From sequence record LC727701.1: a stretch of 64,000 bases of DNA. One strand, 5' to 3'. The translations under genes were made by a program, and so were the position numbers. Below, in pieces: positions 4,181 to 38,833 of the stretch (position 1 is its first letter; every line of letters starts with the position of its first letter). The notes below the pieces were generated by a model. The model was not told the DNA's origin. It worked only from the letters and a program-made list of their open reading frames with translations, and searched no databases.

Positions 4181-6424
4181 ATGAGCGTACATGCCCTAAG
4201 AGAACTGTTTAAACACAAAGGCGAAAAGAATTACGAAGTCTTCTCAATGGAAGATTTCATTGGCCGCCTAGAAAGTGAAATTGGTCTAAATGACAGCGTT
4301 GTTAGTCAAGGTCGTTCCCTTATTAGCAGCATTTCACATGAAAACTTCGGTACCGTGCAAGCTACCGACATTCAAGATGCCGCTGCAATTTATAACAAAA
4401 TGCAAATGCTCGTTAACGACTATGGTTTCGAACGAGTAAGTTCCAGTGATCCTCAAGTACGTGCTCGTGAAGAACGTGTCCGTGAGAACCAAATCACTGC
4501 TGCTACCATGGCTGCTATCGCCTGTGCTGATGAAACTAAATATATCCGTGCACTACGTGGTATTACCAAAGCTAAAGCTTCTAATGAAGATCATGTTAAG
4601 GTTGTACAGCATCAGTTCAATGGCCCTGCTGGTGGCATTCAAGTATTCGAAAATGGTGTTGGCCTAGAGAACTATAACGAGAAGTCACAGCGTGATTTCC
4701 GTGTTGTAACTATTGGTTATAACCTAGCTGCTAGCCGTCAGGATGAATTCGCTGAGCGTATCTATCCGACCACCGTTATCAACCCGATTGAAGGTGGTGT
4801 TGTTCAGGTTCTTCCTTACATCGCTGTAATGAAAGACGTTTACCACGAAGTATCCGGCGTTAAGATGGATAACGAAGAAGTGAACATGGTAGAAGCCTAT
4901 CGTGATCCTTCCATCCTCGACGACGAAAGCATTGCACTAATTCCTGCCCTAGATCCGGCTGGTTCCAATGCTGACTTCTTCGTAGACCCGGCTCTTGTTC
5001 CTCCGTACACCATCAAGAACGAGCAGAACCTAACTATCACTACTGCTCCGCTAAAAGCGAACGTACGTCTTGATCTAATGGGTAACTCCAATGCTAACCT
5101 ACTCATCCAGCGTGGCATGCTTGAAGTTTCTGACACCATTGATCCGGCTGGTCGTCTAAAGAACCTATTCGTTCTACTCGGCGGTAAAGTTGTTAAGTTC
5201 AAGGTTGACCGTCTACCTCGCGCTGTGTTCCAGCCCGATCTAGTTGGTGATACCCGGAACGCAGTTATCCGTTTCGATAGCGATGACCTTGTTGTTAGTG
5301 GCGATACCACTTTCATCGACGGTTCAGCTGATGGCGTTATTAACGACCTTAAGACTGCTAAACTAAGCCTACGTCTAAGCGTTGGTTTCGGCGGTACTAT
5401 CAGCCTATCCAAAGGCGATTCTAAGTTTGGTGCTACCGACACTTACGTCGATAAAGTTCTAAACGAAGATGGTCAAGTAATGGATAATGCTGACCCGGCT
5501 GTTAAAGCTATTCTAGATCAGCTAACTGACCTAGCTGTTATCGGTTTCGAACTAGATACTCGCTTCACCAACACCAACCGTCGTCAGCGTGGTCACCTAC
5601 TACAGACCCGTGCACTACAGTTCCGTCATCCGATCCCGATGCACGCTCCTGTAACTCTACCGATGGACACCATGACCGATGAAGGTCCGGGTGAGGTTGT
5701 TAAAGCTCTAACCGTTAACACCAACATCCGTAACAGCAACAACGCTGTTAAGCGCATGCTTAACTACCTTGCTCAACTACGTGAAGTTGTACACAATGGT
5801 TACAACCGTCCGAAGTTTGGTATCATCGAAGGTGCACTATCCGCTGTAATGCGTCCGACCTATCGTTACAAAGAACTAGATCTTGAGAAAGTCATCGACA
5901 CCATCAAGTCTAAAGATCGTTGGGACGACGTTTGCGCTGCGATCCTAAACTGTGTTAAAGCTGAGCTATTCCCGGCTCACCGTGATTCCAACATTGAAGC
6001 TGCCTTCCGTGTTATCTCCGGTAACCAGGATGAAACTCCGATGTATCTCTTCTGCTCCGACAAAGAGATTGCTAACTATCTAATGACTAAAGGTGACGAC
6101 CGTACTCTAGGTGCTTATCTCAAGTACGATATCGTTTCCACCAACAACCAGCTATTCGATGGTAAGCTAGTTGTAATTCCGACCCGCGCAGTACAACAAG
6201 AAAACGACATCCTCTCCTGGGGTCAGTTCTTCTACGTATCTACTGTTATCGCTGACCTACCGATCACCCGTGGTGGTCACCAGGTTACTCGCGAAATCGC
6301 GGCCATTCCGTTCAACCTACACGTCAACAACATTCCGTTCGCACTAGAGTTCAAGATCACTGGCTTCCAGAAAGTCATGGGCGAAACTCAGTTCAACGGT
6401 AAGCTTGCTGATCTTAAGCCGTGA
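4181..6424 (+). CDS. Major capsid protein, phiKZ gp120-like
   Basis: 747 aa; recognised N-terminus MSVHALRELFKHKGEKNYEVFSME; strong codon bias; GLE|NYNEK fits the S/A/G-X-E head-protease motif; ends in TGA. Confidence 0.95.
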   Translation: MSVHALRELFKHKGEKNYEVFSMEDFIGRLESEIGLNDSVVSQGRSLISSISHENFGTVQATDIQDAAAIYNKMQMLVNDYGFERVSSSDPQVRAREERVRENQITAATMAAIACADETKYIRALRGITKAKASNEDHVKVVQHQFNGPAGGIQVFENGVGLENYNEKSQRDFRVVTIGYNLAASRQDEFAERIYPTTVINPIEGGVVQVLPYIAVMKDVYHEVSGVKMDNEEVNMVEAYRDPSILDDESIALIPALDPAGSNADFFVDPALVPPYTIKNEQNLTITTAPLKANVRLDLMGNSNANLLIQRGMLEVSDTIDPAGRLKNLFVLLGGKVVKFKVDRLPRAVFQPDLVGDTRNAVIRFDSDDLVVSGDTTFIDGSADGVINDLKTAKLSLRLSVGFGGTISLSKGDSKFGATDTYVDKVLNEDGQVMDNADPAVKAILDQLTDLAVIGFELDTRFTNTNRRQRGHLLQTRALQFRHPIPMHAPVTLPMDTMTDEGPGEVVKALTVNTNIRNSNNAVKRMLNYLAQLREVVHNGYNRPKFGIIEGALSAVMRPTYRYKELDLEKVIDTIKSKDRWDDVCAAILNCVKAELFPAHRDSNIEAAFRVISGNQDETPMYLFCSDKEIANYLMTKGDDRTLGAYLKYDIVSTNNQLFDGKLVVIPTRAVQQENDILSWGQFFYVSTVIADLPITRGGHQVTREIAAIPFNLHVNNIPFALEFKITGFQKVMGETQFNGKLADLKP

Positions 6425-6502
6425 GCTGGAAAGGGTTACCGTTATCTAGAAAATGGGACTATCCGTTATTTGGAAGACGGTAATGCCCGGAAGTTAGAAT
6501 AG
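6425..6502 (+). other. In-frame 25-codon extension after the MCP UGA (candidate readthrough domain AGKGYRYLENGTIRYLEDGNARKLE)
   Basis: Same frame as the MCP, ends TAG TAA, lies before the terminator, and repeats the C-terminal motif of the 31600-32133 protein. Confidence 0.7.
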
Positions 6503-6514
6503 TAACAGACATAG

Positions 6515-6534
6515 GCCCTCCCTTCGGGGAGGGC
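6515..6534 (+). terminator. Terminator of the capsid operon
   Basis: GCCCTCCC-TTCG-GGGAGGGC followed by TTTATG. Confidence 0.85.
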
Positions 6535-6543
6535 TTTATGTTG

Positions 6544-6579
6544 TATTACATTAAAAAAAGTTTAAGATCTATATTACAG
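6544..6579 (+). promoter_or_regulatory. phiKZ-type early promoter (virion RNAP)
   Basis: TATATTAC at 6570-6577, the established phiKZ early -10 motif; 35/36 nt identical to 58251-58286. Confidence 0.8.
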
Positions 6580-6620
6580 TAATGATCATGATCTTCTAAT
6601 TTAAAAATAGGTTAATCCAA

Positions 6621-7073
6621 ATGAACGTTCAATTATTTCCAGAAGTCATCGAAAGATGGCAGGATGCCCTGAGGGTATCTCTTATAGAAAAAAATACCAT
6701 GGTAGATAATAAGATGTCTACCGTAGATGATGATAAATACATTAATACTTTCTTTGAAGAATTCCATCCTGTTCAGGATGCCTTTATGCCCAAAGGGCTA
6801 GAGGACTTTATTACAGATTATGCCAAGAAAAACACTGAGGAGATCCCTCAAGAAAAACAGTTTAAGCGGGCCACCGAAAAGTTATATTGTTCGAGTGACC
6901 CGCATAAATGGCAGAAGTCAAGTAATAAGGAAAAGAGTGAATCCTTTAAGGGAAGGTCCGTACATCAAACTAAAAAGAGGCTCCCCAACATTGTAGATTT
7001 GGAGGCCGTTGTGATTAAGGTAGATTTCAATGGTAACACTAAAAATTGCGGGGCTTACTCAAGTATCAGTTAA
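6621..7073 (+). CDS. Hypothetical protein, 150 aa (gp121-like)
   Basis: AGGT SD; first gene after the early promoter. Confidence 0.7.
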   Translation: MNVQLFPEVIERWQDALRVSLIEKNTMVDNKMSTVDDDKYINTFFEEFHPVQDAFMPKGLEDFITDYAKKNTEEIPQEKQFKRATEKLYCSSDPHKWQKSSNKEKSESFKGRSVHQTKKRLPNIVDLEAVVIKVDFNGNTKNCGAYSSIS

Positions 7074-12731: not shown

Positions 12732-13175
12732 TTAACTACTTTCAAATTCAAGAGTTACTGGTATTGTTGGTATCCACGACAAGTTATTAAAGTATGGATG
12801 TATCGTAACCGTATTCCCAGTAATAGGTTGCGGTTGTATCTCATCTATAATAAATGGAATACCGTAAACATCTCTTAATTTTTCAGCTACTTCTAAATTA
12901 TCAGTATAGTCAGTTGGTTTACCCGGTACTTTTATACCAAGACAGTACTCTGGTAAAGAGCGTCTATTAAAGTAAATAACTGTCTCACCTTTAAAATAAA
13001 GTGAACTGGTCTTCGCTCTCATTGTTGTTTTGGCATTTGTACCAGTTGCTAAGAATGTATCAGTCCCTATAAATTCAACATCATCAACAGTTAAATCCCT
13101 AGGCTTACCATTATTATCTTTAGGTTTATTAGCCACATTCCAAGCAGCTACTAATTCAGCTCTTGTATCAGCCAT
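12732..13175 (-). CDS. Putative virion structural protein (gp126-like)
   Basis: 147 aa; GETVIYFNRRSL motif resembles the proteins at 13184, 31600 and 48375. Confidence 0.7.
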   Translation of the reverse strand: MADTRAELVAAWNVANKPKDNNGKPRDLTVDDVEFIGTDTFLATGTNAKTTMRAKTSSLYFKGETVIYFNRRSLPEYCLGIKVPGKPTDYTDNLEVAEKLRDVYGIPFIIDEIQPQPITGNTVTIHPYFNNLSWIPTIPVTLEFESS

Positions 13176-13183
13176 TACACACC

Positions 13184-14059
<876 letters not shown>

Positions 14060-31599: not shown

Positions 31600-32133
31600 A
31601 TGCAGGATATCTTTCCGTATGACATGGCATCGAGGGACGCGCTAGTAAAACTTGCGCGGGATGATTTAAAAATAAACTTCAAACCAGAAACAGTTACATT
31701 TGAAGATATGTTTTTTAGTCCAACCACGATTGAGCCTGGACGTACATTTATTGAAATGATCGACATTACTACTGACATTAAGTACATGTTAACTTACCGT
31801 CGGTTAGATTTTGCTGATCCACGAGCTATTGGTGAAGGATCTATCCTTAAGATAGTTGGTACTTTAACACCTAAAGCAATTGCTGAAGAAATCAACCGTT
31901 CACGGGGTTGGAAGCTTGGACCAGATGATGTTTCATTTGATACAACACCAATCAATGCAACTACGGATGTTGTTCCATACACGATAGTAGCTATGTCGAG
32001 TAGTTATGCTTACTATGGTGAATGTAATATACTAATTCAACGTATTGATGATACATCGGATACTATCCGGCTATTAGAGAATGGCGCAGCACGTTATCTA
32101 GAAAATGGGACTATCCGTTATCTAGAAAGTTAA
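31600..32133 (+). CDS. Putative virion protein (gp143-like) with C-terminal RxLENG repeats
   Basis: GAGGT SD; LTYRRLDF motif; ends RLLENGAARYLENGTIRYLES. Confidence 0.8.
   Translation: MQDIFPYDMASRDALVKLARDDLKINFKPETVTFEDMFFSPTTIEPGRTFIEMIDITTDIKYMLTYRRLDFADPRAIGEGSILKIVGTLTPKAIAEEINRSRGWKLGPDDVSFDTTPINATTDVVPYTIVAMSSSYAYYGECNILIQRIDDTSDTIRLLENGAARYLENGTIRYLES
32092..32121 (+). repeat. Exact 30-nt direct repeat of 6440-6469
   Basis: CGTTATCTAGAAAATGGGACTATCCGTTAT at both loci, in the same reading frame (RYLENGTIRY). Confidence 0.95.
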
Positions 32134-32145
32134 GTAATACCCTCA

Positions 32146-32977
<832 letters not shown>

Positions 32978-33182: not shown

Positions 33183-35552
33183 ATGGCAAATGCTACAGAC
33201 AAAGGCAAGATCAGTCAACTGCCGGATCTAGCTACTCTTAACGATAGCGAGTATATTGAATTAATTCATACCGATGCAGCTGGTCAAGTCGATAACTATA
33301 AGTTTCTGCTGTCAAAACTACAGACTGGGGCACCCGGTCTTAGTGCGTACGAGATTGCCGTTAAAAATGGTTTCCAGGGAACTGAAACCGAATGGCTTGA
33401 TTCGCTTAAAGGTAAATCTTCTTATCAAATCGCAGTCGATCTAGGCTTCGTTGGTACTGAAGAAGAGTTTATAGCATCCCTTAAAGGTGATGCTGGTAAG
33501 AGTGCATATGAAGTAGCTGTGGAAAATGGTTTCCAAGGTACTGAACAGGAATGGTTAACATCACTGCATGCAACCATGACTGCTGAACTACTCCAGACAC
33601 TCTTAAATCAACAAGGCTATACAGTTAAAGATGTACTGCGTGTAACTGGTAAGAATGGTGGATTATCATCCAACGCTGCTTTCCATAACTTTGCTTTCCT
33701 GTTTGATAAGCGTCTAAATCAAGATGACTTAACCGCTGGTGATAAAGTACCACAGCGTATGATGGAACAAGGCCGTATGGAAGCAGAAGGTTATTCTTAT
33801 CTAAAGAACGCCTCTGCACCCACTACGCAAGGTGCATTACCCGAATTACCTGAGTCTGAAATTCGTATTTATGACAATGGTGAATTCCAGATTGGTAGTT
33901 TAACTGATTACATTGCATTCAAGAATGACGGCAATATCCGTATTGTTGAAGGCGCTGATGAATCAACTGTTGATCTTAAGAACCTTCCTAAAAACGAAGG
34001 TATTAGTGGCGGTGTATTCGTCAAAGATGTACAAGCAACTGATCCCAGTCAGAACGTAGGTAGTATTGTGCGTACCCCTGATGGACACAGCGTACAGTCA
34101 TGCCTATCGACCACTAGTAATGTTCGGGTTATCGTTGATGCAATAACTGGACATTCTAGTTATGTACCTAGTGTTAAAATCAATAACGTAGATGCAGTTG
34201 TAACTCCTGGCGTTAATCCACCCATGTGGATTGCTACCGCCGATATTGATCTTGGTGCACCTACTACTGAAGGTTATGCTGATATTGTTGTAGAACACGC
34301 CGATGGGGCTAAATTCACTACTAAGGTATTAGCCGATACTCCCGCTAATATTACCAGTGCTGTATTTACTGGCGGTTATCCGTTAGGTCAAACAGAACTT
34401 AAAGAAGATGACCTTGTTGCAATTAAAGTTGTTACTGATGAAAATATAGTAGCATACGAAATTGCTGACTTTGGTGCACTGAAAGAAAGTAGTGGCACTG
34501 TTGCACCTACTAAAGAACTAGAGGTTACTGGTCTTTACGTAGCTGATCGTGGTAATACTACTAAGGCATATGGTTTCCGTGTACGTGTTCAGAAATCAAC
34601 TGGGTCATGGTCAGAATGGTTTACTTCCAGTGATGCTGGTTCCGAAGATAAAATTAACACCATGCAGTTAAACGATCTTCGCCCAGTTGTTAATATTGGT
34701 CAAGTAACTTATCCGTCTGGTCAAAGTGCTATTAAAGTAGGTGAAACTGCTACTGTAGCCAATACAGTATCTAATGCTGATAGTGTGGTTTATTCCTCAC
34801 CAAATGATCAGCTCACTATAACCAGTGCAAATGAAGCAGAAATTGCTAAGGTAGTTACTTATAAGTCTGGTACTTATAACGACAGCACTAATAACCTATT
34901 AATTACTGCTAAACGTGCAGCTAATGGTAGTGTAGCTACGGCTACTGCTGTTGTAGCTATTGCAAATGCGGTACCTACTGCGACGGTTACCTACCCTGCT
35001 GCTCGCCTTCGTTCAGGTGGTAACTTTGGAACCCAAGTACAAAGTCATGTCATTACTTTAACCTCTACTCAGAAACTAAGTGCAGCTCCGGCCATGAATG
35101 CGCCTGGCGGTAAGTGGGCTACTGAGGATTGGAAATCTGATGCCACTGGTAAGGTATGGACACGTGCATTACTAGTACATGACGATGATCCTAAAGGAAC
35201 CTACGATTTTAACAGTGTGGTTCTAAAAGGTTTAGCTGGTGTTGAAGCTAATAGTGTAAATGGTGGTACTTATGTACTAGGTGGATTTGTATTCCGCACT
35301 CTAAGTGTGGCTGCTTGGCCGAACCGTGAAACTGATATTGGTACTGAAGTAACCAATACTGGTAAACTACGTTGCAGTAACCTATCTAAAGGTTCTACTG
35401 GTAGCTTAAACTTCACTTATAAGGCGGATGATGCAAATCAAGTTGACACCTACACCATCAAGGATGGCAATAAGTGGTATAACTGTGACTCAGCAAACGC
35501 TGTGTCCAACACCACTGGACTGATGAAAATCGAACTTGAGGAAGTAGTATAA
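33183..35552 (+). CDS. Fibre protein (gp145-like)
   Basis: 789 aa; N-terminal KISQLP module, three GxSAY(E/Q)IAVxxGFxGTExEW repeats, beta-rich (Ig-like) C-terminal domains. Confidence 0.8.
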   Translation: MANATDKGKISQLPDLATLNDSEYIELIHTDAAGQVDNYKFLLSKLQTGAPGLSAYEIAVKNGFQGTETEWLDSLKGKSSYQIAVDLGFVGTEEEFIASLKGDAGKSAYEVAVENGFQGTEQEWLTSLHATMTAELLQTLLNQQGYTVKDVLRVTGKNGGLSSNAAFHNFAFLFDKRLNQDDLTAGDKVPQRMMEQGRMEAEGYSYLKNASAPTTQGALPELPESEIRIYDNGEFQIGSLTDYIAFKNDGNIRIVEGADESTVDLKNLPKNEGISGGVFVKDVQATDPSQNVGSIVRTPDGHSVQSCLSTTSNVRVIVDAITGHSSYVPSVKINNVDAVVTPGVNPPMWIATADIDLGAPTTEGYADIVVEHADGAKFTTKVLADTPANITSAVFTGGYPLGQTELKEDDLVAIKVVTDENIVAYEIADFGALKESSGTVAPTKELEVTGLYVADRGNTTKAYGFRVRVQKSTGSWSEWFTSSDAGSEDKINTMQLNDLRPVVNIGQVTYPSGQSAIKVGETATVANTVSNADSVVYSSPNDQLTITSANEAEIAKVVTYKSGTYNDSTNNLLITAKRAANGSVATATAVVAIANAVPTATVTYPAARLRSGGNFGTQVQSHVITLTSTQKLSAAPAMNAPGGKWATEDWKSDATGKVWTRALLVHDDDPKGTYDFNSVVLKGLAGVEANSVNGGTYVLGGFVFRTLSVAAWPNRETDIGTEVTNTGKLRCSNLSKGSTGSLNFTYKADDANQVDTYTIKDGNKWYNCDSANAVSNTTGLMKIELEEVV

Positions 35553-38500
35553 TGGCTTCTGCATTTGAAGATTATGTAAACGGGGAACTTCCCAAACGGG
35601 TATCATCAATTGATGAGCCCACTTCTGTAGTTAATGGACACATCCCGGTTTCTACCGGGGTGGGTCTTAATACTACTTTCGTTGATCCTGTTACTATACC
35701 TGGATTAAAGGGTGAAGATGGTCAGCCGGGTAAAGATGGCGAACAAGGCCCTCCTGGCCCAGTTGGTCCGGCTATTAACATTATCGCTAATGTTGATCTA
35801 GCAACATTCGAACAAGATATTAAACCATTAGATACGCATAATGTCGGTGATGCTTGGTTCGTTGAAGATCGGCTATGGGTGTGGGAATCACCGTTAGGTA
35901 ATGAAGACCCCCCTGTAAAAGGTCGTTGGGTTGAAACAGGTTCACTTCGTGGTCCAGATGGTACTGGTCTAGTTATCCGTGGTCGTTGGCCTAATAACTT
36001 AGAATTACCTAAGACTGAAAGTAATAAACCTGGAGATGCTTATTCATGGAATAATCAACTCTGGGCGTGGATGCTTATCTCAGGTAATAATCCGCCAGAG
36101 AATCCAACTATTGATGACTATGATTGGTTCCCAGTTACACCACAGGGTGAACGTGGACCTGAGGGCCCTGAGGGTCCGCAAGGTAAAGATGGTGAAATTG
36201 GTCCTGAAGGTCCTCAGGGTGAACCAGCAATGCCGTTTACCATTAAGGATTCACTACCATCACCAGCTGATTTACCTGATCCATCTGTAGCTAAAGAATC
36301 AGAAGCATACTTAGTTACTATGGAAGCTGGTAAACCAGAACATCTATTCATCTTTGTAAAAGGGGCATGGTCAGACCTAGGTACTTTCCAAGGCCCTGAG
36401 GGCCCACAAGGTAAACCAGGTAATACAGGTGATCCGGGTCCCGATGGTAAACAAGGTGAACCTGGTCCACAAGGTCGTAACTTAGAAGTAGTTAAAGCAG
36501 TTGAAACTGCTGATGATCTATTAACCACCACTGGTGTAGAACAATACCAAGGTGTTTCAGTACGTTCCACCAATACGGTTTATGTACTGACTGGCCAAGA
36601 TCCGACTGTTGATATCTCATGGACAGCCATGGGTTCATTCCGTGGCCCGCAGGGCCCTGAAGGTCCGCAAGGTGAAGATGGCGAACAAGGTCTACCTGGT
36701 GAACCAGGGGCACAAGGTAAATCGGCTTTCCAAGTAGCATTGGACAATGGCTTCACTGGTACTGAGGGTGAATGGTTAATCAGTCTACATGGTAAGAACG
36801 TAGTTATTACTGGTGCTGTTGCCAATGAGGCAGCCCTGCCGGCAGATGCTCCTGATCAGGCAGCGTACTTCACACAAGACACATCTACCTTATTTGTTAA
36901 GATAGATGGTAATTGGGTAAATAGTGGTACACATCGAGGTCCTAAAGGTGAAGATGGCGCACCTGGTAAAGACGGTGATCAGGGACCAGAAGGACCCGAG
37001 GGACCAGAAGGCCCACAAGGTCCCGCTGGTGAACCTATCCAGATCATCGCAGCGATTGACACTCCTGAAGATACCCCACCAGAAGCACTTGCCGATAACC
37101 AATGGAAAGCATATACTGTTAAGTCCACGGGCGAAGTATTTGTTAACATGGACGGTAGTCGCTGGACTAGCATTGGTATTATGGCAGGTCCGCAAGGTAA
37201 ACCGGGTGAAGGTTTAAACATTAAAGGTGTTTTAACCGATGCTTCACAACTACCAAAGAAAGACACTGATCCTGACTTAGTAACTGGTGATTCATACTGG
37301 GTTGAAACTAACGAAGGTACAATGCTCTATACTTACCAAGGTCAGGAAATTGATGGCTATATCGGCCCAATTAATCTAAATGGTGAGCAGGGTATCCAGG
37401 GTGTCGAAGGCCCACAAGGTCCTGAAGGTAAACAAGGTGGTGGTCTATTAATTATCTATGTTGGTGATGATGCTGGTAAACCAGTAGCATCTGCTGATAA
37501 CGTAGGTAAAGGTATTGCCATTCGCACCAATACTGAAGGACAAGTAGAAGTATTTGTAAGTATCGATACTGAAGGTACATTTACTTGGGAAAGCCTAGGT
37601 GTCTTAGCCATGGGTCCGCAGGGTCCTGAAGGTCCTGAGGGCAAACAAGGTGTTCCAGGTATCCCTGGTAAAACCGGTCAGAAAGGTGAACGTGGATCCT
37701 CTTGGGTAATTCTACCTGAAGGTCAAACTGCACCCACTTCTATCGATGGTAATCGTGGTGACTGGTGTATCGACAAAACTGGTACCGTTTGGTATAAAGA
37801 TGCTAACTGGGTTGTATTCTACAAATTAATGTCAGTTCCAGTTAGTGAAGTCGATCCAGAAGATGTCGATAAGAAAATGGTTCGGTACAAACTCGGTTGG
37901 ACTGAACTACCTGTTGATGAGGTGGTAGATGCTGAAGTAGGTGTCTTCTATGGTCGCCGTAAAGCAACCGCTGACGGGGCTGTTGAATGGACTGCTATTG
38001 AATTACCAACACCTGCCATTGATGCTGTACCTAGTCCAGTTGTTAATGCACAATACGTTCGTAAAGGTATTGCAGGGGGTGAAACTGAATGGGCTACCAT
38101 TACATTCCCAGAAATTCCTTCAGATGTAGTACGCGATACTGCACAAGCTACTAAGCCTCAAGGTCGTGTAGCTGGTAACTGGGTTGATGTAGCACCTCTG
38201 CAAACCGATGATACTCTAATGGGTATGCAAAATGGTGAATGGGTAGCTGTACCAGCCGCAGTTATTGGTGAAGTACCTAGTGAAGGTGCTAATGGCACTA
38301 ACTATGTACGTGAGAAAACAGCTAGTGGTTCTAAATGGACACCTGTAACTATTATAGTTGATCAAGCTGATGCTACTAGTGGACAACTATTCCTACGTAA
38401 TGCTGCGGCTAAATCATGGACTCTATTCCAAGGTCCGAATAATGATGTAACCGCTGATGGTGATTGGCTACGTAGCCGTACTGGTACTAATATTACTTGG

Positions 38501-38833
38501 AAGAAGCTAGATAAATCATTCGATGCATATAGCCTAAAATCAAGTACATTCACTGGTACAGCTCTGACTATAACACCTGCTAACCAGCAGTGCTATAGGG
38601 TTCAAACTGCTGCTAACCAAACCATTACACTAGAGAATGGACCTGTTGATCGCATGATCACAGCTGTTCTTGTATTGCTTGGTAAGGTAGCTATGCCAAC
38701 ACTGTCTAGTGCAGTGCTACAGTGGAACAATGGTACTCCAGTAATAGTAGATGACCTAGGTGATACTAAAACAGTTCTCACCCTCTTATGGGATGGTACT
38801 AACTGGATAGTTTCCAAAGGTGCTGTTATTTAA
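35552..38833 (+). CDS. Collagen-like fibre protein (gp146-like)
   Basis: 1093 aa; about nine Gly-X-Y blocks separated by small Trp-containing domains; C-terminal W..G.P...D..LLWDGTNW domain. Confidence 0.85.
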   Translation: MASAFEDYVNGELPKRVSSIDEPTSVVNGHIPVSTGVGLNTTFVDPVTIPGLKGEDGQPGKDGEQGPPGPVGPAINIIANVDLATFEQDIKPLDTHNVGDAWFVEDRLWVWESPLGNEDPPVKGRWVETGSLRGPDGTGLVIRGRWPNNLELPKTESNKPGDAYSWNNQLWAWMLISGNNPPENPTIDDYDWFPVTPQGERGPEGPEGPQGKDGEIGPEGPQGEPAMPFTIKDSLPSPADLPDPSVAKESEAYLVTMEAGKPEHLFIFVKGAWSDLGTFQGPEGPQGKPGNTGDPGPDGKQGEPGPQGRNLEVVKAVETADDLLTTTGVEQYQGVSVRSTNTVYVLTGQDPTVDISWTAMGSFRGPQGPEGPQGEDGEQGLPGEPGAQGKSAFQVALDNGFTGTEGEWLISLHGKNVVITGAVANEAALPADAPDQAAYFTQDTSTLFVKIDGNWVNSGTHRGPKGEDGAPGKDGDQGPEGPEGPEGPQGPAGEPIQIIAAIDTPEDTPPEALADNQWKAYTVKSTGEVFVNMDGSRWTSIGIMAGPQGKPGEGLNIKGVLTDASQLPKKDTDPDLVTGDSYWVETNEGTMLYTYQGQEIDGYIGPINLNGEQGIQGVEGPQGPEGKQGGGLLIIYVGDDAGKPVASADNVGKGIAIRTNTEGQVEVFVSIDTEGTFTWESLGVLAMGPQGPEGPEGKQGVPGIPGKTGQKGERGSSWVILPEGQTAPTSIDGNRGDWCIDKTGTVWYKDANWVVFYKLMSVPVSEVDPEDVDKKMVRYKLGWTELPVDEVVDAEVGVFYGRRKATADGAVEWTAIELPTPAIDAVPSPVVNAQYVRKGIAGGETEWATITFPEIPSDVVRDTAQATKPQGRVAGNWVDVAPLQTDDTLMGMQNGEWVAVPAAVIGEVPSEGANGTNYVREKTASGSKWTPVTIIVDQADATSGQLFLRNAAAKSWTLFQGPNNDVTADGDWLRSRTGTNITWKKLDKSFDAYSLKSSTFTGTALTITPANQQCYRVQTAANQTITLENGPVDRMITAVLVLLGKVAMPTLSSAVLQWNNGTPVIVDDLGDTKTVLTLLWDGTNWIVSKGAVI

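Follow-up and report, generated by a model that had tools for sequence, protein, structure and literature searches.

The 64,000-nucleotide (nt) stretch of record LC727701.1 analysed here, referred to below as the window, carries the same 30 nt in two places, past the stop codon of the major capsid protein gene and at the 3' end of a gp143-type gene. This raises the question of what a short shared sequence does at both sites, and whether the copy beyond the capsid stop codon is translated. The regions tested were 100% identical to phage NK1 and 99.5% identical to phiKZ, placing the window in a phiKZ-type Pseudomonas jumbo phage. The explanation that we find best as a whole, at a probability of about 0.5, is that both copies belong to a fibre-docking tag shared by gp143 and by a capsid isoform that would be made by readthrough of the capsid UGA codon. 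The features on which this explanation turns are as follows.

4181-6424, + strand: major capsid protein gene of the phiKZ gp120 type, 747 codons, from the open reading frame (ORF) list; 100% identical to NK1 and 99.5% identical to PHIKZ120 of phiKZ
6422-6424, + strand: TGA stop codon of the capsid gene
6425-6499, + strand: post-stop in-frame stretch of 25 codons, a candidate readthrough extension, followed by TAG TAA
6440-6463, 6464-6487 and 6488-6499, + strand: tag units on the capsid side, preceded by a 5-residue linker
6440-6469, + strand: copy A of the exact 30-nt repeat
31600-32133, + strand: gp143-type gene, 177 codons, with a DUF7941-type N-terminal domain (residues 1 to ~150) and the C-terminal tag
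32068-32127, + strand: three-unit tag of gp143, with units beginning at 32068, 32092 and 32116, followed by an S codon and the stop
32092-32121, + strand: copy B of the exact 30-nt repeat

One tag in two genes

Direct comparison confirmed that positions 6440-6469 and 32092-32121 are identical over 30 nt, with different bases flanking them on either side, and that both copies lie in coding frame, as the initial annotation of this DNA had described in linking the capsid extension to the gp143 C-terminus. A scan of the window for exact repeats of 20 nt or more returned this repeat as the longest. In protein sequence, each copy is part of a tag of three 8-residue units of the form R-x-x-E-[DN]-G-x-x, the last shortened to R-x-L-E. 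The gp143 C-terminus reads RLLENGAA, RYLENGTI and RYLE, then S and the stop codon, and the stretch after the capsid TGA reads AGKGY, RYLENGTI, RYLEDGNA and RKLE, then TAG TAA. The two tags are shifted by one unit, such that capsid units 1-2 correspond to gp143 units 2-3, and the "about 2.5 repeats" of the initial annotation is better stated as exactly three R-x-x-E units per copy. Of the tryptic peptides, YLEDGNAR occurs in the window in the extension alone, whereas YLENGTIR is common to the extension and gp143. Scanning the six-frame translation of the 64 kb for R.LE[ND]G gave four occurrences, all at the gp143 and capsid sites (0.08 in shuffled sequence), and tblastn with the gp143 tail found exactly two places in each complete phiKZ-type genome.

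Ten residues are encoded identically at all synonymous sites in the two copies, and because the synonymous sites of all ten codons agree, the 30-nt identity indicates a probable recent gene conversion, in keeping with the duplication or conversion first proposed from it. The exact 30-mer has been lost from gp143 in a PA7-like strain, and in other genera, where the 30-nt identity is absent, the two tags within one genome differ at free positions. Conversion of the tag thus appears specific to this lineage.

The tag and the KISxL module in other phages

In the cultured-phage collection, tblastn with queries of 24-46 residues had little power. Scanning IMG/VR with a degenerate DNA pattern of three units in register returned at least 120 loci. 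Among the matches listed, to which the counts of tagged loci in this section refer, the tag was at the extreme C-terminus in 99 of 120, with exactly three units in 99 of 99 of these and 0-2 residues before the stop in 89; there were 87 distinct core sequences. Most tagged contigs were of ordinary phage size. After the tag was stripped, the carriers fell into at least 29 unrelated clusters, which fits well with the portable tag proposed from the window. These carriers included gpJ-like tail-tip proteins, tail-tube proteins, beta-helix spikes, a PASTA-domain protein, proteins of 45-60 residues and the gp143 family. Tail-tube proteins (Pfam Phage_tail_2, ~145 residues) from uncultured siphophages ended in the three-unit tag at loci L098, L102, L137, L147, L150, L151, L177 and L184; if the tag is a fibre plug, such carriers would place a plug on every tube subunit.

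What follows the tag is often a gene that opens with M-x-x-K-[IL]-[ST]-x-L ... G-x-E-L-x-E-[IV]-x-Q, referred to here as the KISxL module, and a hidden Markov model (HMM) of this module was built from the N-termini of genes following tagged genes. In the window, the following features are concerned.

33183-35552, + strand: gp145-type fibre-like protein, 789 codons, with matches to fibre repeats in PHROG
~33201-33338, + strand: KISxL module, the N-terminus of gp145 (HMM, E = 3e-6)

A KISxL start lay between -60 and +150 nt of the tag stop for 49 of 97 C-terminal tags, compared to ~1% expected by chance, and for eight further C-terminal tags the module was found farther downstream. This tag-then-KISxL adjacency spanned 22 of the 29 carrier clusters. 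The reverse scan, starting from the module, found 95 new loci, in 24 of which the upstream gene ended in a relaxed three-unit tag, usually 14-26 nt ahead of the conserved Lys codon of the module; a tag anywhere was present in 32 of the 95, compared to 1 match in 861 kb of shuffled control. Both directions of scanning agree with the statement of the initial annotation that L-E-[DN]-G repeats occur beside KISxL modules, and the adjacency lends support, at the level of sequence, to the N-terminal KISxL module of gp145 as the candidate partner of the tag.

Within the window there are two tags and, by the HMM, one KISxL module, at the N-terminus of gp145 only, and gp145 starts 1.05 kb after gp143 with one gene between them. 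Relatives of the PhiPA3, Psa21 and Noxifer types have one or two fibre-like genes with a diverged KISxL module at the equivalent place. Proteins with the module carry collagen-like or fibre repeats, and because of these repeats they are probably trimers. A profile search of PDB with the KISxL alignment found no solved structure that contains the module.

A similar arrangement was seen in the cultured Ralstonia phage RsoM2USA (L285:1092-2193, + strand), in which gene 409 ends in three 8-residue units of the same geometry that lack the Arg/Glu pair and have an x-L-x-[DT]-G periodicity. Gene 410 begins 14 nt after gene 409 and has a KISxL-like module, and the two genes may be a diverged tag/module pair.

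The tag could instead act alone, as a small surface-exposed module for adhesion or self-association like the Ig-like domains of phages, with KISxL genes lying nearby as part of a shared host-recognition tail cluster. The carriers, from capsid and tail tube to tail tip and spikes, do cover a range like that of displayed Ig-like domains, tail-tube and capsid carriers occur without an adjacent KISxL gene, some tags are internal or N-terminal, and one relative (L029) has a Big_2-looking ORF at the equivalent place past the capsid TGA. However, that ORF has its own ATG three codons past the stop, the adjacency is positionally exact, with KISxL starts a few nt from the stop of the tagged gene in 22 unrelated carrier families, and the strict three units at a fixed distance from the C-terminus suit a defined partner better. 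Stand-alone adhesion is therefore unlikely, and a tag that docks on KISxL proteins is the reading developed below.

gp143 and the capsid post-stop stretch

The tag was kept in 53 of 53 full-length gp143 homologues, down to 34% identity. Pfam DUF7941 (PF25613) matched the gp143 of the window with E = 0.0017 and 18.3 bits, below the cut-off of 27, and PF25613 was found precomputed on 17 gp143 homologues in a protein search. The AlphaFold2 model of gp143 had a predicted local distance difference test (pLDDT) score of 89.5, and its sole significant PDB fold match was 9xqd_0 of the phiKZ outer baseplate (E = 1e-6, template modelling score 0.59/0.69), a chain that we infer to be gp127. As modelled, the body of gp143 has the DUF7941 N-terminal domain fold, as in phiKZ gp127. 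The tail (residues 151-177), for which the initial annotation had proposed a beta-hairpin, had pLDDT 73-83 and showed only beta-bridges every eight residues in the same model. Two more DUF7941 proteins are encoded in the window.

12732-14056, - strand: gp126 and gp127, assigned to DUF7941 by Pfam with E = 8.9e-10 and 7.3e-28, respectively

Neither gp126 nor gp127 contains the tag motif. In the literature, gp143 is counted among the three DUF7941 proteins of phiKZ and described as a virion protein, and it is also described as regulating lysis, with its globular domain acting on the holin. The two published roles, virion DUF7941 protein and holin-specific lysis regulator, remain unreconciled.

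The Goslar study proposed that the DUF7941 family forms baseplate-anchored filaments through head-to-tail docking. Under this rule, the tag might dock on the DUF7941 N-terminal domain of gp126, gp127 or gp143, and the capsid extension would anchor DUF7941 filaments and not gp145. The filament proteins are like gp143 in their N-terminal fold and in that a flexible segment towards the C-terminus is thereby proposed to dock on a partner, and in the published AlphaFold models a disordered region of one protomer adds strands to the N-terminal domain in the next, to which the periodic beta-bridges of the gp143 tail, modelled with moderate confidence, can be compared. However, the docking segment of the filaments is a linker that binds another DUF7941 domain, and the three-unit tag is unmentioned in the Goslar study. 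The tag is also absent from gp126 and gp127 and widespread outside the chimalliviruses, being common in contigs of ordinary phage size, whereas DUF7941 is reported to be chimallivirus-specific, and tag-KISxL adjacency requires no DUF7941. Docking on DUF7941 is thus quite improbable compared to docking on the KISxL module of gp145.

Some lineages have the tag on the gp143 homologue and none on the capsid gene, and because of this gp143 looks like the older carrier of the two. One TAA-ended capsid locus (L040) is on one contig with a tagged gp143 homologue (L054), and three other TAA-ended loci share a metagenome with another tagged homologue (L057).

On the capsid side, two further elements lie at or beyond the post-stop stretch.

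6433-6488, + strand: possible RNA hairpin starting 8 nt 3' of the UGA, for which the evidence is weak
6513-6536, + strand: intrinsic terminator hairpin starting 8 nt 3' of the closing TAG TAA of the extension

A capsid TGA with 24-30 open, tag-bearing codons behind it was found in every Pseudomonas phiKZ-like lineage examined (7 named genera), comprising phages of the phiKZ, PA1C/PS119XW, PhiPA3, 201phi2-1, Phabio, Psa21 and Noxifer types and uncultured relatives. The capsid TGA is followed by 26-30 open in-frame codons with the periodic motif in PA1C, PhiPA3, Phabio, Psa21 and 201phi2-1, and by the tag in Noxifer and in a Noxifer-like contig whose capsid protein is 49% identical to that of the window. 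Wherever the extension was present (25 loci, 20 distinct sequences, capsid identity as low as 49%), the stop was TGA (25 of 25). IMG/VR capsid loci with a complete 3' end (n = 28) divided into 20 that ended in TGA, 19 of them tagged, and eight that ended in TAA, all eight without the motif and with the next stop after just 3-8 codons. Far from being absent at homologous loci in relatives, a result that the initial annotation would have counted against itself, the motif is carried by all 53 gp143 homologues and by the 20 distinct capsid sequences, and by the Noxifer-like phages. For comparison, TGA is the stop in 10 of 59 likely genes of the window.

Codon choice varied among the 20 distinct sequences, with 2-4 synonymous codons at the invariant columns of Arg, Glu and Gly and switches between CGN and AGR in two of the three Arg columns. 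Frame 0 after the TGA was open in 20 of 20, and stops were present in the +1 frame of 19, in the +2 frame of 17 and in the reverse frames of 20, 11 and 10. The first 8 post-stop codons contained no in-frame ATG, GTG or TTG in any of the 20, and the base after the capsid TGA was a purine throughout. The terminator at 6513-6536 sits 3' of the extension, as does an equivalent hairpin in all relatives examined. A single stop is therefore followed by an in-frame continuation that has no start codon of its own, with both the identity of the stop and the protein sequence of the extension conserved. This protein-level conservation points to translation of the post-stop stretch via programmed UGA readthrough, which would be the only economical route.

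As to how the UGA might be decoded, zero tRNA genes were found within the 64-kb window, and therefore no suppressor is encoded there. Selenocysteine recoding was set aside, as no selenocysteine insertion sequence (SECIS) element matched positions 6350-6650 in Rfam at E up to 10. No Rfam family reached threshold on the same positions, which gave only sub-threshold terminator-like matches. The 25-residue post-stop piece matched nothing in Pfam or among PDB sequences, and an Ig-like or other known display domain was set aside for this piece. The post-stop stretch is unannotated in all public records examined, and full-text literature searches for the motif strings or for phiKZ readthrough found nothing relevant.

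Could the stretch be conserved without being translated, either as a nucleic-acid element at the capsid 3' end or as a passive product of gene conversion from gp143? Conversion is clear in the phiKZ lineage, the extended protein is unreported, and a stable hairpin overlaps the stretch (6433-6488; minimum free energy -28.3 kcal/mol, z = -2.8), in which a 5-bp stem that pairs the first Arg codon with the second Asp-Gly codons was kept in 19 sequences with some, limited covariation. However, amino acids are kept while codons vary, including the Arg CGN/AGR switches, one of six frames alone stays open, and the stop is TGA wherever the stretch exists and TAA where it is absent. In other genera the two tags of a genome are unlike as DNA, and conversion therefore cannot be what maintains the stretch. 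An untranslated element is very unlikely on these grounds. A further account, in which tags on gp143 and on capsids compete for one factor and thereby couple lysis timing to head production, draws on the finding that gp143 advances or blocks holin triggering in plasmid systems but is hardly credible, given that the predicted holin contact is in the globular domain and not in the tail, that tail-tube, tail-tip and spike proteins of many phages carry the tag with no link to lysis genes, and that gp143 homologues are present in virions.

Other sequences were seen past capsid genes, or past stops of the same kind. In an IMG/VR contig of 27,955 nt from a small phage (L135:824-1837, - strand), a 310-codon ORF of unknown function, three genes past the capsid gene, ends in TGA-A and is followed by 27 in-frame codons with a three-unit tag, and a KISxL gene begins 26 nt further on; this locus is a candidate for a second, independent readthrough-added tag. 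The tag was absent from five distant chimalliviruses with capsid identity of 25-30%, and the capsid genes of RAY, RTH11 and pVa-21 end in TAA. Burkholderia phage FLC9 (L066) and Ralstonia phage RP12 (L067) have a capsid TGA-A and 15-18 in-frame codons, with R first and DGF inside, that bear no relation to the tag. TAA-ended capsid genes at L028, L031, L032, L036, L039 and L040 have Thr/Gly-rich C-terminal tails in place of the extension. At L029:3754-4365 (+ strand), 203 codons resembling a Big_2 Ig-like domain lie in frame past the TGA of a capsid gene with 55% identity. The ORF was set aside as support for readthrough in view of its own ATG, and it may be a separate decoration gene.

A model for fibre docking and its context

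In the model that we favour, the tag would be a portable C-terminal docking site for fibre proteins with a KISxL N-terminus, here gp145. One carrier would be gp143, a small protein with the DUF7941 N-terminal fold that is proposed to join the baseplate-anchored filaments. The other would be a minor isoform of the major capsid protein, extended by 25 residues and ~2.8 kDa wherever the TGA at 6422-6424 is read through, with near-cognate decoding as the likeliest mechanism. Because KISxL fibres look trimeric, one three-unit chain could hold one fibre trimer. Rare tagged capsid subunits would show this plug on the head exterior, so that each virion would gain a few head fibres. The published model of the capsid protein (PMC11297242) follows its C-terminal arm as far as residue 747, at the hexamer centre, and has it touching the exterior protein gp244 at pentons, and because the arm is at the capsomer centre and contacts an exterior protein, the plug would be displayed outside the head. 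The Goslar capsid protein, when fused at its C-terminus to green fluorescent protein, localised like capsids.

Several observations weigh against this model. Among the matches listed, a KISxL gene is missing from the neighbourhood of ~40% of tagged genes, and some tags lie N-terminally or inside the protein, such as behind a Dit-like domain; no upstream tag accompanies ~70% of KISxL genes. The N-terminal and internal placements suggest that tag units may also serve as a structural linker or split point in fibre-bearing proteins. The pooled ratio of nonsynonymous to synonymous polymorphism (pN/pS) of the extension was only 0.63, and the evidence for an RNA hairpin near the UGA is weak. No protein evidence for an extended capsid isoform was found in the literature. 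The cryo-electron microscopy papers on the capsid and the whole virion (PMC11297242 among them) mention neither readthrough nor gp143 nor gp145, head fibres on phiKZ are likewise unmentioned in these papers, and gp145 and gp146 are missing from the published virion atlas. In a transposon screen gp143 tolerated insertions and gp145 and gp146 did not, and an essential gp145 must therefore have some anchor besides gp143, unless the insertions had polar effects. Lastly, the lysis-regulator phenotype of gp143 is ascribed to its globular domain and not to the tail.

Units lying N-terminally or internally, such as those that separate a Dit-like or gpJ-like body from another domain, were seen at L124/L148, L142, L176, L076 and L106 and at L114, L154, L162 and L169.

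Extending the model to tailed phages in general is more tentative. It would hold that these phages share a plug-and-socket system of a three-unit C-terminal peptide and trimeric KISxL fibres, within which Pseudomonas chimalliviruses including phiKZ place plugs and head fibres by capsid UGA readthrough, and we consider this somewhat short of an even chance. The tag/module pair itself is widespread and apparently undescribed. If the pairing holds across the carrier families, at least 29 in number, it would provide a sequence-level guide to which virion protein bears which fibre in uncultured phages. phiKZ serves as the model of nucleus-forming jumbo phages and in phage-therapy research, and structures exist for both its capsid and its whole virion. 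If real, a conserved isoform made by readthrough of the major capsid gene in a double-stranded DNA (dsDNA) phage would be an overlooked case of recoding in a well-studied phage, of which we met no prior description, and would form a low-occupancy surface feature of a kind that escapes symmetric averaging. gp143, gp145 and gp146 are unplaced in the published virion models, and the tag/KISxL pairing gives a concrete rule for attachment.

Recoding at the end of a capsid gene has precedents. In phage Q-beta, readthrough of the UGA of the coat gene yields A1, a minor C-terminally extended subunit present in few copies per virion and involved in host interaction. The phiKZ product predicted from sequence would be alike in the leaky UGA that ends a capsid gene and in the minor extended capsid subunit, whereas Q-beta is a small RNA phage that adds a domain of ~200 residues and phiKZ is a dsDNA jumbo phage that would add 25 residues, apparently as the plug to which a separate fibre attaches. 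Programmed frameshifting gives T7 gp10B and adds Ig-like domains to phage structural proteins. These cases share with the proposed phiKZ case a high-copy structural gene that is recoded at its 3' end, a sub-stoichiometric decorated form and the same range of carriers (capsid, tail tube, fibres), and differ in that frameshifting adds a folded domain, whereas readthrough in phiKZ would add a peptide of 3 x 8 residues without a Pfam match. New here would be the combination of capsid readthrough in a dsDNA phage with a 25-residue plug instead of a domain.

Head fibres have been described on phages such as 7-7-1 and phiCbK, with an adenovirus-type model in which a flexible trimeric fibre has its N-terminus at the capsomer centre and makes the first host contact (PMC12796354). 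Those fibres are at pentons, with dedicated anchor proteins and full occupancy, whereas in phiKZ, on which no fibres have been seen, a readthrough form of the major capsid protein would act as a rare anchor, probably positioned at the centres of hexamers.

Two genes near gp145 complete the neighbourhood.

32195-32977, + strand: gp144 endolysin / lytic transglycosylase (Pfam PG_binding_1 and SLT), between gp143 and gp145
35552-38833, + strand: gp146-type collagen-repeat tail fibre protein

The gene order is identical in relatives, with gp144 between the tagged gene and the fibre gene, and the KISxL module was not detected in gp146. gp145 belongs to phrog_15433, which PHROG labels "tail sheath", and several GenBank records copy this label. 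It looks wrong for a protein with a KISxL N-terminus and fibre-type repeats, the sheath being gp29. Lastly, a 28-nt stretch at 6552-6579 of the window, ~20 nt past the capsid terminator, contains TCTATATTAC and has a second exact copy elsewhere in the window. The short motif TCTATATTAC is kept 3' of the terminator in the four closest relatives examined, with a variant form in Psa21 and 201phi2-1, and the 28-nt stretch looks like a phage promoter element ahead of gp121.

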